A DNA stretch of 64,000 bases from Setoptus koraiensis (lineage: Eukaryota > Animalia > Arthropoda). Each line of letters opens with the position of its first letter. Position 1 is the first letter of the stretch. The position numbers and the translations under genes were made by a program. Shown here one piece after another: positions 35,097 to 41,860 of the stretch. The stretch covers positions 4,712,001 through 4,776,000 of the forward strand of contig CM106585.1 in the NCBI GenBank assembly GCA_048013815.1, given 5' to 3'. Under the pieces are notes generated by a model. It was not told where the DNA came from, made no database searches, and was given only the letters and a program-made list of their open reading frames with translations.

Positions 35097-36407
35097 ATGG
35101 ACAAGGCACCACAACAACAAAAACCAGATATTACTTGTTTACAATTCTTTGAGCAGCTCGAACAACAAAACAATTTACACATAGATACAACTAATAATGG
35201 ACCTAATGTTGCCAATCAATCAACGCAACAACAACAACAAAATACTAGATCTACAACAAATAATAATCAAATTAATGATGACGGCCGCAGCACGTGCCTT
35301 AGGAGATGCGATCACAATTCAAAATTAAGCACCGCGTTATCACATATGCTTCAGAAGGAATTTATGGTGGATGTTACAGTTTCCTGTGATGATGGACAAC
35401 TAAATGCTCACAAACTAGTGCTAGCGGCTTCGTCATCATATTTTCGTACCTTGTTTCTCAAAAAGCCAAACACACATCATTATCCTATTATTGTCTTGAG
35501 GGACATAGCCTTCATGGACCTCAAGACTGTCATAGACTTCATGTACTACGGGGAGGTTACAATCACATCCGAACGATATGATTTAATTATGAAATGCGCA
35601 ACTTTTCTATTGGTCGAAGGTATCTCAAATTCATTTAACAATGTTGTCGCTACCTCACAACAAGACGACACATCGCAATGCAAGATGACTACATCATCTT
35701 CAACATTGATGCAGGATATGTCAGTTGGACAGGACAGCACACTACTTAGCCTGGACACTACTATGTATAGGGCCCAGTTGAGCGAACAACAAAATCCTCC
35801 AATTAAATCTGATGGAAATGATGCAGCTTGTCATAATGATACTGTTTGTGGTGGCCAATCAAAAGATCAAAGGATTTTGCACTATAATTTCAATCCATTC
35901 AATGAACATTTTAGAAAACTGAGAGAGCACATAGTCACAATAACTGAAGAAAATAAGCGACTAAGTGCAAGGCTCGCGTTACTAGAAGCAGGAAATGACG
36001 CCAATCTAACTAGAAAAATTGATGATGCTATTGAACATTCACAGGAATTGGAAACTCTCAGAAAGCAGGTCATGGAGGCTGAAACACGGGAGGCGAAAAT
36101 AATGGCCTCATTCAAAAAAACAAGCAAGGATTTTCGAACTATGTGCTACTTATTGACAGGTTTCAGAATAGATGCGCTGAAAGAAAGAAAATATAGATTG
36201 TCTAGCATGTACGCGGAATCGCCTGATGATGTACTTTATTTTGAGACCAGTCCAGATGGAAGTGTACAATTGCTCCAAAACGGATATAGTGAGAGGTTAT
36301 CTGAATATGTTGAGACGTATTTACAGCGAGCTGATAGTTTTCCAGCCTTCTTGGCGTCAATAACGTTGGATCTATTCAAGGCTTCGACAATGATCAACAT
36401 AAAATAA
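35097..36407 (+). CDS. MAD1: BTB(POZ)::MAD1 C-terminal chimera, 436 aa, single ORF
   Basis: aa about 73-176 is a tramtrack/broad-type BTB (DVTVSCDDGQLNAHKLVLAASSSYF...VIDFMYYGEV). From aa 259 the protein matches MAD1: MAD2-binding motif RILHYNFNP (human KVLHMSLNP), coiled coil, and CTD (FRTMCYLLTGFRID...YRLSSMYAE...DSFPAFLASITLDLF). Confidence 0.85.
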   Translation: MDKAPQQQKPDITCLQFFEQLEQQNNLHIDTTNNGPNVANQSTQQQQQNTRSTTNNNQINDDGRSTCLRRCDHNSKLSTALSHMLQKEFMVDVTVSCDDGQLNAHKLVLAASSSYFRTLFLKKPNTHHYPIIVLRDIAFMDLKTVIDFMYYGEVTITSERYDLIMKCATFLLVEGISNSFNNVVATSQQDDTSQCKMTTSSSTLMQDMSVGQDSTLLSLDTTMYRAQLSEQQNPPIKSDGNDAACHNDTVCGGQSKDQRILHYNFNPFNEHFRKLREHIVTITEENKRLSARLALLEAGNDANLTRKIDDAIEHSQELETLRKQVMEAETREAKIMASFKKTSKDFRTMCYLLTGFRIDALKERKYRLSSMYAESPDDVLYFETSPDGSVQLLQNGYSERLSEYVETYLQRADSFPAFLASITLDLFKASTMINIK

Positions 36408-36458: not shown

Positions 36459-38501
36459 TCAGTTAATAATACTGAACTGAGTATCATTGGGTTGCATGGA
36501 TTTGTTATATTCTTCAAGGATCGCTTGCAAGTTTTTTGCCTCTTTGATGACAAAGTTGACATTGGCTATGACCCAAGTGCTTAGCTCATTAATATAAGGG
36601 TCAATCATTGGTTTAGGCATATTAAGTAGCTCTTTGAATAACGAGGGCCACACACTTGTTGGACATCCCTTAAATGTACGATCTACAATCCAGAAATTGT
36701 TTTGTGTGTCCTTTGCGGGCTCTATTTGCTCCCCGAAAAACATTCTGTGTATACAATCCAATGCTCCGAACCAATCTATCTCATTCGACCATGGTTTAGA
36801 GTCATGCATCTGGCAAATCATCATGTCACTGAGTTTACTTTCAAATCGACTACCTTCAGGTAATAGTCTCATATCCATGGCACGATCAAAGCCAACTAGC
36901 TTTATTATGGAAGTTCTCTCGTTGATTTTTGTTATGTCATCCTTTGATGGGTTATTGGCTATGAAGAGATTATTTATATTCAAACTCATGTGAATTATAT
37001 CACACGAGTGTATTTGCTTAATTACCTGGAGTAACTCAAGTGTGACGAGAGCAGCTATAGATTTGGGGAACTGCTTGTGTAAACTGTCGCAAGCGTCGAG
37101 AAATCTTGACAGAGGTGCCAAGCCGGGGTACTCATCTATTAGTACACTACCATCTTTATAAAACACAGCAGGGTTCGCATTCATGACGGACAACTCTATA
37201 TCCGGCTGACACCGTTGTTTGACTAATCTACGATGCAACTCTTTACAAATGTAGAATAGCCAGTCGTTGGCTGGTTGGTCGATCTTGATGCAGCATACTT
37301 TCAACGGTACGATATTCATTGTAGATTCATTTGATTCATCATCTTGCAGTAAGGTTGCTCCATACAATCGATTGGCAGAAGATATATCCCGATCTATCAG
37401 ATACTCATCATTACCAGCTCTAATGAGGGTATGATTTAACTTGATTTTCGGTAAGTTTCTGGAGTATCTAAATACCCCTTGTCTGGCGATAGGCTCATTT
37501 AAACAGGCAAGTAAGCGATTATAGGATGTTGGATCTGCGGGATCAATTGGTCTTTCTGGTAGCAATGGCGCTGGTGTGATTTGGTTAGTTTTTTGAGCTG
37601 TGCCAGGAGTTGCGCTCAAGCCAGAAGAAGACGACGAAGATTTACTGTTGCAATCTCTACTTGTTTCTACAATGGGGCTCAACTTGAGAGTGGGCGAACC
37701 TCCAAGAGAAGGACGAGACAAGCGCCGGCTAGCTATAGAGTTACGTTTTTCGTTTCCATTATCTTGTCTTTTTGCCTTTGGTGTGGATGAGTCAGCGTTG
37801 TCTCTCAAATATTGTGACTGGTCAATCGGATAAGTCAATTTATCATTGTAGGTTGTCGTTTGGTTGGAAATTGTTGCACACCAGAGATCCTGGACGGCTG
37901 TGTGCGATGTTTCGTTGAACTCTAGACATTGTGTTGTTTGAAAACATTGTGGCAGAATAGATAGTCGGTTACTTTGTGTACCAGAACCATTTGGAATGGT
38001 GTTGGAGTTTTGTTGGATTATTTGCTGTGACGATTGTTGCGGTGGCAATGATTGTTGTTGGCTTAGTTGTTGCTGCAGAATTTGTTGTTGTTGCATCAAC
38101 AATTGCATCTGCTGAGTCAAGAAATCAATTTTTTGCTTTTGATCTTCATTCTCTTTTTTCATCTGCTCGTATCCCTTCTTCAATTGTTCGTTCTCTCTGA
38201 ATACTTCATCTTTGCGTCTCTTCTCTAGAATTAGCGTTTTTGACTCAGCGAGTCTCTTGAATCTCAATTCTTCAAATGACAACTCAATACCATAGCACCC
38301 GCCTGGATATAGAGTGCGCGTATCAACGAAGAATCTATGTGACGGATTCAGGTTTTCGTGTATGAAACGCGGCGCCGGGTCCTCTGGCTCAATGTTTCTA
38401 TTCTCTTTTTTATCCTCTGGTGGTGCTGGTCTGCTTGTTGCTGTTTTGGCCGGTTTTATCAGTCCATCATCAACATAAATCTGGAACTTTGCTGGTGCCA
38501 T
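36459..38501 (-). CDS. BubR1: BUB1/BUBR1 (MadBub)-family checkpoint protein, TPR-less, with predicted pseudokinase; 680 aa, intronless
   Basis: ABBA-like FQIYVD (aa 6-11), KEN (aa 32-34), GLEBS (LYPGG...LSFEELR), B56-docking LSPIVE, and a BUB-type kinase fold (IKIDQPANDWLFYI; GSVL; KPWSNEIDWFG) with HGD changed to HMS and DLG changed to GFD. Confidence 0.88.
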   Translation of the reverse strand: MAPAKFQIYVDDGLIKPAKTATSRPAPPEDKKENRNIEPEDPAPRFIHENLNPSHRFFVDTRTLYPGGCYGIELSFEELRFKRLAESKTLILEKRRKDEVFRENEQLKKGYEQMKKENEDQKQKIDFLTQQMQLLMQQQQILQQQLSQQQSLPPQQSSQQIIQQNSNTIPNGSGTQSNRLSILPQCFQTTQCLEFNETSHTAVQDLWCATISNQTTTYNDKLTYPIDQSQYLRDNADSSTPKAKRQDNGNEKRNSIASRRLSRPSLGGSPTLKLSPIVETSRDCNSKSSSSSSGLSATPGTAQKTNQITPAPLLPERPIDPADPTSYNRLLACLNEPIARQGVFRYSRNLPKIKLNHTLIRAGNDEYLIDRDISSANRLYGATLLQDDESNESTMNIVPLKVCCIKIDQPANDWLFYICKELHRRLVKQRCQPDIELSVMNANPAVFYKDGSVLIDEYPGLAPLSRFLDACDSLHKQFPKSIAALVTLELLQVIKQIHSCDIIHMSLNINNLFIANNPSKDDITKINERTSIIKLVGFDRAMDMRLLPEGSRFESKLSDMMICQMHDSKPWSNEIDWFGALDCIHRMFFGEQIEPAKDTQNNFWIVDRTFKGCPTSVWPSLFKELLNMPKPMIDPYINELSTWVIANVNFVIKEAKNLQAILEEYNKSMQPNDTQFSIIN

Positions 38502-38859
38502 AGTTGTAGTTTAGGATATCCTTTACAATAAATTAATCAGTAGTTAATGAAAATAACTGTCATCTATTATTATTAAATAGCAGACTAATAGCAATTGAAG
38601 TAATATCATAATACAAGCGATAATGTAACAAAGACGTGCATTCAACACGTACATGCATCGCAGAGGCGCTCAAAGTGTTGATTCACGAGTTCTATTTGCA
38701 ACGGTTATGTGCGCTTTTCGAGCGCACCAATAGTTTTGAATCAGTGTGTATCATGGCGACAACCAGTGTGTGCATTCGTTATGTAAAACAAAGTTGCACT
38801 CTCCTGCGCATGCCTGATTGCAATGGGGAGAAATCAGTTATGAGTTGGTTGGTCAGTTA

Positions 38860-39815
38860 CAGGGTGTCTAGAGCAAGCGATACAGCCTTCCGCAGTGCAT
38901 TCTCTGCATAAAAACAATGCATGCTGCGTAAAATTTTTACAAAGTGCACCCATGTTTCACGGAAGGTACACGAGAGGCGCTGCTCACATTTTGCGAATGA
39001 GGAGAATTCAGTTCAGCGTTGCCCTCGCGGACCTTTCGCAAACTAGGCTGGACGCCACATGCATTCTCTTTTGTTCGCTTTCGTTTGTTTTTACTCCCTT
39101 GAAGAATCTGCCGCCAGGGAGCCATTTTTGATTGCACGTTGGTGCGAATTGCATACGCTGATAGCGTCTCAAACGACTGCATAGTTGGCGATACTACCTC
39201 ACAGCAAGACAGAGCAGAAGCCAACGAAAGCGAATTCGCCGAGATAACCATACTGCGCTTTTTGTTCCCCTTACACTGTGAAGTAACAGTGATGTTCGCT
39301 TGTGTGCGCTGCTTCCACTTTACTTGCGACACCCTATAACAAGGTGGAAGAGAGAGAGAGAAATATAAATAAACCAATATGATCTTCATAGGGCGAACAT
39401 ATGTGCTGGATTGGCGCAAAACTTGTGTAGGGTGTGAGGTGCAAGTAGTCAAGATACAAAGGCATCTGTGCAGCACAGCAGCACAGACAGTCCCAATGTG
39501 TAGTATTGTTTGCCCGATGCAATGTGGCGCCAAACGTGCTCAGAATCTCGCTAATGCACGAACTGTGCGATGCAAGCAAGCGCAGTGAGGGTGAGATTTT
39601 TCTGATGTACCTACATTGGTTTGCAAAAGAACCGCGAGGGCGGCGCTGCACTGCATTTTCCGTTGAGCAAACGTTGAGCAGCGCCTCTGATGGATCTCTC
39701 ATAAAACATCGGTGTGCTTCGGATAAATCGTGCAGTGTATTTGTGCAGAAAATGCACTGTGGAAGGCAGCGTAGCATGATCTGCAGAAATTTGACTACTG
39801 GCATGTCACACCCTA
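38860..39815. mobile_element. Old non-autonomous TIR element (about 956 bp) with long diverged subterminal inverted repeats
   Basis: TA-CAGGGTGT at the left and ACACCCTA-TA at the right. About 38880-39050 is a diverged reverse complement of about 39620-39775 (for example gccttccgcagtgcattctctgca vs gccttccacagtgcattttctgca). Confidence 0.6.
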
Positions 39816-40028
39816 TACAGTGAATTGCGACATTTCTGTGCAACAAGCGCAGTATGAAATACCCAAGAGCCAAGACACAAAATGGCAAGATCACGATGAC
39901 GAATGAGAAAAAAACAAAAATAGGAATAACTCAATTCCTTTGTGTCATGTTATCATTATTATTTTATTATCATTACCCATCATTACACTATTACCGGTCC
40001 AGGCAACACCATCACAATCGACAGCAAC

Positions 40029-41860
40029 ATGGCCACTGGATACCCCGATGAGCTGAATCCGTTCGGCGACGAATGCGACGATCAACTCCCTAAGCACCAC
40101 CTGAAGACGACTCCCCGAACCCGAAAATCACCCTCAAATGCCAACCATCCTATGACTAAGAAGCCAACTTATCCAGAACAATTGAATCCATTCGATGTTG
40201 ACGATGCAGCCGAAGCCACCAATGACGACGACGACTACGATAATAGTTTCAATCCTTTTGCAGCAGAATCAGATGCAGTCGTTGATAACATGCCCAAGAT
40301 AGATTATGATGAGACGCTGAATCCTTTTGATGAGGACAATGAGGAGCCAGACCGCAGCCTACGGTTGGACAGCAGTCTCGATCATAATAGAAAGGCGGAA
40401 CAATGCACACGGGAACTATCATCGCCAACATGCCGGTCTCACGATGGCTCTACAACAAATTTGAGCGTTGACACTAGGCCTAAACCGTTTCCAAGAACAA
40501 AAAGCCTATTGAAAAAAGAAGGAAAACTTATCGAGGACAGAAAATCAAATGCATCCCAAGATCAAAGCGTGCCAGAAGAACCACAAGATGGCGGAGCAAG
40601 TTCATCTGGCAAGATTGACGAACCAGCGACGGCCACCGAGACAACGGTAAATCCTAGTTCTAATGTTGATAAAGGTCTCGTGGTTGAAAATAATCAAGAT
40701 CCTCATGATAGTAACCAAAATGTGAAGCAAAACTTAGCCAATGGTAGTGTAAAAAGGTTTGAAGGACGTCACGATGACAGAAACGCCGCTCTTTGGAGAA
40801 AAATAGGTCTTAAAAAGAGAGCGGCTCCTCCCTTGCCGGTGAACTTCAAACGCCAAGTGTTCGGCTCACTTGTCGAAATTGAGGCAGAACTCAATGAAAT
40901 TGGCGATAAGTTAGTGGACATTGAAGAGCGGTTTCTAGTTTGCGAGACAAAGATGCTCGAGGAGCGCTCAGAGACGAACGGTAATTATGCATCCAAATGT
41001 AGCAACATCTTACCATCTTACATAATTTCGCGAAAAGCTTGATTTACATTCAACATGTTTCATTTTTTGCCTCTGCATAATTAGATTCCCCCAAAGCCAA
41101 ACCAGCTGATGCGAACACTCCTATTAGACTTCACTTCATTGAGTTAGTGAAGGAAAAATGCGACCTGGCAAGAAGGCAAAAAGATCTTATGTATAAAAAA
41201 AGGGAACATATTTTAGATCAATCGCATTCTGATATCGAGTACGAGCTTCGCATGATTGGGAACAAGCAAGGTATGTTACAGAATCTGAGTCTTACAATAA
41301 GTTATCGATGATAAACTTAATTACTAATCCATTGTTTTTTTTGTCCGAATCAACAGCTTCAAGCAGGACAGACCAAGACGATCAGCGGGAACAAGAACTT
41401 CTCAAGAGGCTAGTTGAGATAATAGAGGAAAAGAATGATATCGTTGAAAATTTGATCAAAGATAATTCGATCAGGTAAGTGCAGCTTGTTACGACACGGT
41501 GCATATCAAACTAGTAGTGAACCAATAATAATAAATTTCTACTTGACGACTTTTCTTCTGCACAGTGATGAAGACGAGCTCAATAAAGCCTTGAAACGAC
41601 TGGATATTAGGTCACCGTCGGGCGAAAGTTTCTCGGGTCAGTCAGCAAAAGACTGTGATAGAAAAACTGCTGCATTTAATAATAACCAAGCGTCTCATGA
41701 TGCGAGCATATCAAAACAGGATAAGTCCAAGAACAAGCACCGTCCATCCACAACAAAAGCATTGAAAACCTTAAAAAAATATGGCAAAGTGGTTGTAAAG
41801 ATGAGTAAGAAAGATAATGATAATGCGCCGAAATCTAGAGTGACTAAAACTCCCTTGTAA
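40029..41860 (+). CDS. MICAL-like/EHBP1-family Rab effector (four NPF motifs plus bMERB domain), about 516 aa
   Basis: Exons 40029-40980, 41085-41270, 41357-41474, 41566-41860 with GT-AG sites and consistent phases (1, 1, 2). NPF x4; KKRAAPPLP; bMERB-like ELVKEKCDLARRQ...IEYELR...REQELLKRLVEIIEEKNDIVENL. Confidence 0.75.

Follow-up and report, generated by a model that had tools for sequence, protein, structure and literature searches.

The locus analysed here raises the question of how a checkpoint gene of the MadBub type (MadBub being the ancestor of Bub1, BubR1 and Mad3) comes to be without a TPR domain, and what its product could still do. It lies in a 64,000-nucleotide stretch of the eriophyoid mite Setoptus koraiensis (GenBank assembly GCA_048013815.1, contig CM106585.1, positions 4,712,001 to 4,776,000 of the forward strand), hereafter called the window, whose numbering is used for all coordinates without a prefix. 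The gene is a 680-amino-acid (aa) open reading frame (ORF) on the minus strand. An earlier note, made from the sequence alone, had described it as a TPR-less BUB1/BUBR1 pseudokinase beginning directly at an ABBA-KEN cassette and had proposed either gene fission, with the KEN1-TPR part encoded elsewhere, or a checkpoint that no longer builds a canonical mitotic checkpoint complex (MCC). The combined evidence argues for fission: the ORF most probably represents the BUB-type part of an ancestral MadBub gene whose split dates to the eriophyoid ancestor, and its product is likely a Bub3-dependent kinetochore scaffold with a dead kinase.

The ORF is a real and intact gene on which strong purifying selection acts. 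It contains no internal stops and is the only copy in the genome; the genome search returned no second Bub1-like copy, including the catalytically intact BUB1 that the earlier note had considered, and no active Bub1 kinase remains in the genome. Compared with the congener gene (L019), the ratio of nonsynonymous to synonymous substitution rates (dN/dS) is 0.076 overall and 0.062 for the kinase fold, while residues 1-110 have a value of 0.17, the highest of the four segments compared. In the contigs of four sequencing runs, covering 5,951 letters, no joint falls inside the ORF. Two low-depth runs span the genes yet leave out 38433-40223, which is a hint at most, since contigs cannot reveal transcript ends. 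A search for sequencing runs turned up none recorded as RNA. As the earlier note had stated, an in-frame TAA closely precedes the ATG, and in-frame stops are also found 5' of the equivalent start codon of the BUB-type gene in two other species. Within the upstream intergenic region, the TPR scan described below found nothing, and the minus-strand ORFs 38937-39533 and 39334-39894 have no Pfam match. The Pfam scan of the 680-aa ORF itself gave a single weak, sub-threshold Pkinase match.

The missing N-terminal part is encoded on the other sequence of the assembly. A six-frame search of the 48.76-Mb genome (two sequences) with Mad3_BUB1_I (PF08311) returned exactly one significant TPR match, at G000:C2:6646425-6646790 on contig 2. 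The match belongs to a distinct Mad3-like gene of two exons, which has a KEN1 exon and a stop codon of its own, as the fission proposal had anticipated. A second match (E 0.49) was rejected, as it reads as a SYF1/XAB2-type HAT-repeat splicing factor and not as MadBub. The Mad3-like gene was treated exon by exon: searches were made with exon 2 (L001:883-1863, minus strand), and for exon 1 the analysis was confined to its translation. This first exon contains a canonical KEN1 (DWDHCKENIQPLTQGR) and is followed by a phase-2 GT-AG intron, after which exon 2 encodes the TPR (PF08311, E 1.8e-29), LDVFAD (ABBA1), REN and FAIFED (ABBA2) before the stop. It has neither GLEBS nor kinase. The spacing of ABBA1, REN and ABBA2 is 30 and 35 residues, compared with 26 and 32 in mammalian BUBR1, and dN/dS against the congener is 0.053. 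With KEN1, TPR and a normally spaced ABBA1-REN-ABBA2 on this gene, and with MAD2, CDC20 and BUB3 present in the genome, the alternative proposal of a checkpoint without a canonical MCC is not needed here. Under the TPR-based definition of MadBub (Tromer et al. 2016) the 680-aa ORF lies outside the family, the sole TPR of the genome being on contig 2, whereas by descent it belongs to it through collinear homology with an unsplit oribatid orthologue.

Both genes are found throughout the sampled eriophyoids. A word search with the 680-aa ORF returned 34 full-length orthologues with 36-89 % identity, one of them named Aceria tosichella BUB1, and the search with exon 2 returned 37 short Mad3-like orthologues. 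These are 226-453 aa long, and Aceria tosichella 'BUB1 beta' is among them. This species possesses both genes of the pair (P0014, P0047), and in a metagenome-derived eriophyoid they are located on different large contigs. GLEBS occurs in none of the 37 Mad3-like orthologues, and the G-x-E-N box lies at most 24 residues from the C-terminus in 35 of the 36 that have the box. The extra FAIFED tail with ABBA2 is present only in this genome and its close relative; the tail (KPTFAIFEDDCD) resembles the oribatid sequence KPKFAIHADDSD and retains the ancestral spacing.

About one third of the eriophyoid Mad3-like proteins (P0052, P0055, P0063, P0064, P0066, P0070, P0072, P0074, P0075, P0078 and P0079) carry an N-terminal extension ahead of KEN1 that opens with an ABBA-like motif (MPKLQIYIDP, MPKIKIYQDP, MAIYVE) and is similar to the M-A-P-x-K-F-Q-I-Y-V-D start of the BUB-type gene. 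Either an ABBA was moved or regained here and may offset the lost ABBA2, or the extension is a gene-model artefact.

The ancestral arrangement can be read from oribatid mites, in which the gene (P0035 and relatives, with P0085 from Oppiella nova) is unsplit. Its order is KEN1, TPR, ABBA1, QEN/EEN, ABBA2 (KFAIHADD), GLEBS, a CM1-like ALSMMRDMW, ABBA3, STP, KLSPIVETSRE and kinase. The match of the ORF to P0035 (E 6e-33, 31 % identity, 63 % of the query) extends from ABBA2 through the kinase N-lobe, and the family profile spans residues 340-1018 of human BUBR1. The first oribatid intron, of phase 2 and located in the codon ahead of a conserved Q-F, agrees in position and phase with the intron of the Mad3-like gene described above. 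Because the relatives hold the same gene pair and the oribatid gene is unsplit, the split of the ancestral MadBub is old and eriophyoid-wide. Judged from gene content, it predates the divergence of the sampled eriophyoid lineages, as Aceria (Eriophyidae) and this genome both have the pair. That related mites routinely lack the TPR in this gene had been named in the earlier note as an observation that would speak against its reading; it holds across eriophyoids, and instead speaks for a real architecture of considerable age.

The elements listed by the earlier note, namely FQIYVD, KEN, GLEBS, the coiled-coil/poly-Q region and LSPIVE, were all located in the ORF (Table 1), and their conservation was counted over 35 sequences, the ORF and its 34 full-length orthologues. 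For a protein of this length we estimate a chance expectation of about 0.5 for the ABBA pattern and about 0.1 for KEN, and for this reason a single match to either carries little weight and the conservation counts were relied upon. In 31 of 35, the sequence opens with M-A-P-x-K-F-Q-I-Y-V-D or a close variant of the ABBA; in the remaining four, the gene model begins at an internal Met or has no recognisable ABBA. This ABBA is aligned to KFAIHADD of the oribatid MadBub, and position 6 of the family profile is aligned to residue 340 of human BUBR1 (6tlj_S), the residue that marks ABBA2 (Di Fiore et al. 2016, PMC5179498). The tripeptide KEN-32, in contrast, is present in this genome alone (1 of 35), the 89 %-identical relative reading KEEKN at this position, and it sits C-terminal to the ABBA rather than N-terminal. 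The second KEN of the ORF (aa 116-118) lies within the coiled coil. Thus, of the 'ABBA-KEN cassette' the ABBA is conserved and the KEN is not, and because KEN-32 is unique to this genome there is no conserved cassette. The ORF contains only the equivalent of ABBA2 and not the complete ABBA1-KEN2-ABBA2 cassette, and KEN1 with its flanking helix-loop-helix residues is also absent.

Downstream of the ABBA, the GLEBS pattern E-x-[ST]-x-E-E is found in all 35 sequences, and E73, E77 and E78 are invariant among 20 aligned sequences. The STP motif is likewise present in 35 of 35 (S239, T240 and P241 invariant in the alignment), as is LSPIxE, which here reads LSPIVETS at aa 274-281 within an invariant KARD block. 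This block is also found in the oribatid MadBub and in mammalian BUBR1 (KKLSPIIEDS). The STP precedes it by 32 residues, an arrangement reported for metazoan MadBub (PMC7608062). Two further elements were compared. The CM1-like core lies between GLEBS and ABBA3 and matches in position the oribatid ALSMMRDMW and the Haliotis SPTVNTQEALKVVRGMF; no S-P-T phospho-acceptor is visible ahead of it, and it could be what is left of CM1, the motif that binds Mad1. The degenerate ABBA3 is aligned to KFxIYSD / FAIFSD of the oribatid MadBub and no longer matches the ABBA pattern.

The C-terminal region retains the fold of a Bub1-type kinase. The family profile matches the human BUB1 kinase domain (4qpm) with E 3.5e-47 and BUBR1 with E 5e-33; the matches to 4qpm, 4r8q and 6f7b (E about 4e-47) cover chain residues 11-314 and include the N-terminal extension of the Bub1-type kinase. 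The alignment agrees with the earlier note in that the Gly-rich loop, the catalytic Asp (HMS) and the Mg-binding Asp (GFD) are missing, and with all three gone the ORF is, on its residues, not an active kinase of the BUB1 type. The catalytic Asp position holds Asn or Ser in 31 of 34 readable orthologues, Asp in P0017 and P0031 only, and Lys in one. GF[DE] stands in place of the DFG motif in 33 of 35, which is every sequence in which the motif was found. The beta3 Lys is present in this ORF and is Arg in most relatives. For the mites compared, the kinase-motif comparison that had been suggested gives a divided picture: in eriophyoids the Mg-binding Asp is lost wherever the motif could be read and the catalytic Asp nearly everywhere, but the kinase exons of the oribatid gene (contig L021), in a region that holds introns, read HADLKPDN and DFG. 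The loss of the kinase is therefore specific to eriophyoids, and the ancestral kinase looks active.

Table 1. Features of the BUB-type gene and its 5' flank, with window coordinates
Feature	Position	Strand	Remark
Probable C-terminal half of split MadBub gene	36459..38501	minus	intact intronless 680-aa ORF
Bub1-type kinase fold, predicted catalytically dead, aa ~319-665	36507..37547	minus	profile match to human BUB1 kinase
KLVGFDRAMD replacing LIDLGQSID	36873..36902	minus	Mg-binding Asp to Gly (GFD vs DLG)
IIHMSLNINN replacing IIHGDIKPDN	36969..36998	minus	catalytic Asp to Ser; catalytic-loop Lys to Asn
KARD-like predicted PP2A-B56 docking motif KLSPIVETS and Ser-rich tract, aa 273-293	37623..37685	minus	KLSPIVETSRDCNSKSSSSSS
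S-S-T-P predicted Polo-box docking motif, aa 238-241	37779..37790	minus	STP = aa 239-241
Degenerate ABBA3 KLTYPIDQSQY	37809..37841	minus	family consensus KFTVPIDQS; Pro at aromatic position
CM1-like core SHTAVQDLW, aa 199-207	37881..37907	minus	family consensus APSVVQDLW
Coiled-coil and poly-Q linker, aa 86-164	38010..38246	minus	direct sequence reading
GLEBS / predicted Bub3-binding motif, aa 56-84	38250..38336	minus	ELSFEEL at aa 71-77
KEN tripeptide, aa 32-34	38400..38408	minus	lineage-specific
ABBA FQIYVD, aa 6-11	38469..38486	minus	equivalent to ABBA2 of ancestral ABBA1-KEN2-ABBA2 cassette
In-frame TAA	38511-38513	minus	three codons separate TAA from ATG
Upstream intergenic region without TPR-coding exon	38502..39941	.	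extends to divergently transcribed gene

On this evidence, the ancestral mite gene would have carried KEN1, TPR, ABBA1, KEN2, ABBA2, GLEBS, CM1, ABBA3, STP, KARD and an active kinase, and by the order of the motifs it appears to have been broken between KEN2 and ABBA2. In eriophyoids its content is divided over two genes. One is the Mad3-like gene on the other chromosome, with KEN1, TPR, ABBA1 and xEN2, and in this genome also ABBA2. The other is the ORF described here, with ABBA2, GLEBS, the coiled coil, a possible CM1 remnant, a decayed ABBA3, STP, KARD and a kinase fold that has lost its catalytic residues. Its product cannot be equated with BUB1 or with BUBR1, but is the BUB-type half of an unduplicated arthropod MadBub. 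It would bind Bub3 through GLEBS and, together with Bub3, dock at unattached kinetochores on the phosphorylated MELT motifs of KNL1. At this site, its N-terminal ABBA would retain Cdc20, its STP would retain Polo kinase and its LSPIxE would retain PP2A-B56, with the dead kinase fold presumably serving as a structural module. The anaphase inhibitor itself would consist of the soluble Mad3-like protein with Mad2 and Cdc20.

Further checkpoint components were located in the genome. Its sole HORMA gene (G000:C2:7915000-7915545, L008) reads as MAD2, and p31comet, REV7 and a meiotic HORMAD are not among the HORMA-domain matches of the genome scan. CDC20 and CDH1 are both present. A 333-aa member of the Bub3/Rae1 family (L016), found via the FKCHR pattern, matches RAE1 with E 9e-50 and yeast Bub3 over its full length; because L017 matches RAE1 far better (E 2.5e-143), L016 was taken as BUB3 and not as the RAE1 orthologue. 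A further candidate, L012, has a strong WD40 match and was rejected because its sequence points to a G-protein beta subunit. For the MAD family, the genome yields one match, a single ORF of the window (35097-36407, plus strand) that joins a BTB domain (E 2e-21) to a MAD1 C-terminal region (E 1.3e-43); it lies tail-to-tail with the BUB-type gene at a distance of 51 bp. In a second eriophyoid (L004), two short MAD1 genes of 254 and 239 aa, in which BTB is absent, lie on either side of the BUB-type gene, so that the linkage of the BUB-type gene and MAD1 is conserved and the BTB fusion is not. Finally, a KNL1-like ORF of 346 aa (G000:C1:10661196-10662236; L022 797-1837, minus strand) carries SSILR...RVSF near the N-terminal end, together with three MELT-like motifs of the form M-[DE]-x-[TS] (MDLT, MEIS, MEQT). 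Of the checkpoint genes whose status the earlier note had proposed to check, BUB3, CDC20 and MAD2 are thus present and a KNL1-like ORF can be seen, but the Pfam scans for the KNL1 RWD and Shugoshin_C domains are without a match, as discussed below.

A different role for the N-terminus has to be considered, in which residues 6-34 are a working bipartite ABBA-KEN cassette and the protein itself is an inhibitor or pseudosubstrate of Cdc20 and APC/C (the anaphase-promoting complex/cyclosome). In a model of the CDC20 WD40 domain with residues 1-40, FQIYVD occupies the inter-blade groove and K32-E33-N34 the top face of CDC20. The complex scored 0.76, with the best of three controls at 0.50; 51 of 78 solved complexes attained that mark, as did 2 of 108 mismatched pairs. 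The runs share at least 62 % of contacts, the partner's predicted local distance difference test (pLDDT) value is at least 54, and residues 6-11 and 28-38 make the contacts. The model lends support to the predicted binding of residues 1-40 to CDC20, and it places both motifs as a bipartite cassette would require. Nevertheless, such a cassette is unlikely. KEN-32 is found in none of the relatives, residues 1-110 are the least constrained segment of the four, and KEN1 and a full cassette are already provided by the Mad3-like gene, while the predictor already knows KEN-Cdc20 structures. How the ancestral gene came apart is a separate matter, for which duplication followed by complementary truncation is the favoured route on the present motif comparison, because in this genome both halves retain ABBA2 and the tail of the Mad3-like protein resembles the oribatid motif with its ancestral spacing. 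The same observation makes it rather improbable that the two genes arose from a single chromosomal break in the KEN2-ABBA2 linker, or that the ORF is a 5'-truncated intronless retrocopy. In most species, however, there is no overlap between the halves, as the Mad3-like proteins end shortly after xEN2 and the BUB-type genes open at ABBA2, which is what a single break would leave. The ORF also has no introns, as would be expected for a retrocopy, although introns occur in the oribatid kinase region and the ancestral 5' intron persists in the Mad3-like gene. This absence of introns says little, since eriophyoids have lost introns across the genome: 84 % of their genes have none, and those that remain are preferentially at the 5' end (PMC7738191). 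The tree, with its basal polytomy, cannot polarise the ABBA2 character.

Two further explanations would deprive the TPR-less form of its meaning, and both are very improbable. The form could be an annotation artefact if a missed upstream or trans-spliced exon provided KEN1-TPR, and the 5' end is indeed known from genomic DNA alone. It is hardly credible that such an exon exists, however, as the sole TPR belongs to a gene of another chromosome whose own stop is conserved, in-frame stops precede the start here and in two other species, the Met-Ala-Pro start is conserved over about 30 lineages, and the upstream ORFs are without a Pfam match. Equally slight is the chance that the gene is a decaying relic without a checkpoint role. 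The lost catalytic residues, the decayed ABBA3 and the CM1 phospho-acceptors that are no longer visible would fit decay, but not the low dN/dS over the whole gene and the kinase fold, the intact ORF in 34 relatives down to the most divergent, or the invariant GLEBS, STP and KARD.

Several points weigh against the preferred reading of a split MadBub whose BUB-type half is a kinetochore scaffold. All binding partners and the localisation are predicted from motifs. The gene model is based on genomic DNA alone, and contigs cannot show the transcript 5' end. The CDC20 model may owe its score to solved structures of ABBA-Cdc20 and KEN-Cdc20 that the predictor has learnt, and a control scored as high as 0.50. 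The tree places the basal eriophyoid node as a polytomy, so the ABBA2 of the Mad3-like gene in this genome could be ancestral or regained, and the split could have come about by duplication or by a single break. The outgroup sample consists of oribatid mites alone, in which a second paralogue is possible. Moreover, the Pfam Knl1_RWD_C scan of the genome gave no match and did not detect the KNL1-like ORF either, and the Shugoshin_C scan of the genome gave nothing significant. These two blanks are not evidence of absence, since the models are weak for fast-evolving proteins.

Among the closest known systems is the unsplit MadBub of other invertebrates, such as oribatids (e.g. Oppiella nova P0085, L021) and abalone (the BUB1-like protein P0087). 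It is collinear with the ORF from ABBA2 to the end, through GLEBS, the CM1 position, the ABBA3 position, STP, KLSPIxE[TS]S with the Ser tract and the Bub1-type kinase fold, but differs in carrying KEN1, TPR, ABBA1 and KEN2 on the same polypeptide and in keeping H-x-D-[IL]-K-P-D-N and DFG. Vertebrate BUBR1 shares the C-terminal pseudokinase, STP followed by a KARD LSPIxE, GLEBS and an ABBA2 at the homologous place. However, it has its own KEN1, TPR, ABBA1 and KEN2, is an MCC subunit and has an active-kinase partner in BUB1, of which there is none in the mite genome. With BUB1 of human and yeast, the ORF has in common the position of a kinetochore-side paralogue, GLEBS, a motif at the CM1 position, an ABBA and the closest kinase fold, whereas BUB1 has a TPR, an active H2A-phosphorylating kinase and no KARD, and the ORF has no TPR, a predicted dead kinase and a KARD. 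The Mad3-like gene, in turn, is comparable to Mad3 of fungi and plants in being short and kinase-less with KEN1, TPR and an ABBA-KEN-ABBA region, but it has no GLEBS, the Lys of KEN2 is not kept (G-x-E-N) and ABBA2 is missing in most species. A duplication and fission of BUBR1 in teleosts (event 7 of Tromer et al. 2016, PMC5204127) also gave N- and C-terminal products, the C-terminal one being TPR-less. There, the split affected an already specialised BUBR1 while BUB1 stayed intact alongside it, and of the C-terminal product only the zebrafish lineage has a surviving copy; in the mites, the split affected the sole MadBub gene, and all sampled eriophyoid lineages have retained the two products.

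The eriophyoid pair is an unusual clade-wide variant of the known pattern of MadBub subfunctionalisation. MadBub duplication with parallel subfunctionalisation is a textbook case of repeatable evolution, with 16 independent duplications, among which arthropods are represented by Diptera alone (Tromer et al. 2016, PMC5204127), and the mites would add one event. No paper connecting Bub1 to eriophyoid mites was found in the literature search. The mite case is peculiar in that the BUB-type copy has no TPR, a domain said to be common to the whole family (Tromer et al. 2016), the MAD-type copy has no GLEBS, and the break lies inside the ABBA-KEN-ABBA cassette. In addition, the kinase died on the BUB side, which leaves an animal without Bub1 kinase but with a KARD-bearing scaffold. 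This amounts to a natural domain-separation experiment that makes testable which functions require one polypeptide. The cassette has been described as always tied to KEN1, with linkage and spacing conserved across eukaryotes, and ABBA272 as essential but ABBA340 as dispensable after MCC stabilisation (Di Fiore et al. 2016, PMC5179498). The Mad3-like protein of most mites, with ABBA1 and xEN2 but no ABBA2, fits this dispensability of ABBA340. A bolder interpretation, which we put forward only tentatively, is that the eriophyoid checkpoint as a whole has been rewired, with a divided cassette, no Bub1 kinase and a naturally minimised set of components. If so, the cassette would be shared in most species between a soluble, Bub3-independent Mad3-like protein and a kinetochore scaffold, and ABBA2 would act in trans or as a kinetochore Cdc20 receptor that replaces the decayed ABBA3. 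As there is no Bub1 kinase, the Bub1-dependent H2A phosphorylation/shugoshin pathway would be absent, and the shortened MAD1 and the miniature KNL1 candidate would be part of the minimised checkpoint.

Some minor observations were made in the region upstream of the gene. Positions 39627-39825 are a short, very-high-copy repeat with a word depth of about 2,970 compared with about 109 nearby (run X1). Run X2 skips an 868-base stretch at 38879-39748 whose ends are not splice-like, which points to a structural polymorphism. The divergent neighbour (39942-41042, plus strand) has no Pfam match; its product is acidic and contains NPF motifs at four places (LNPFGDE, LNPFDVDD, FNPFAAE and LNPFDED), which are typical for EH-domain ligands.

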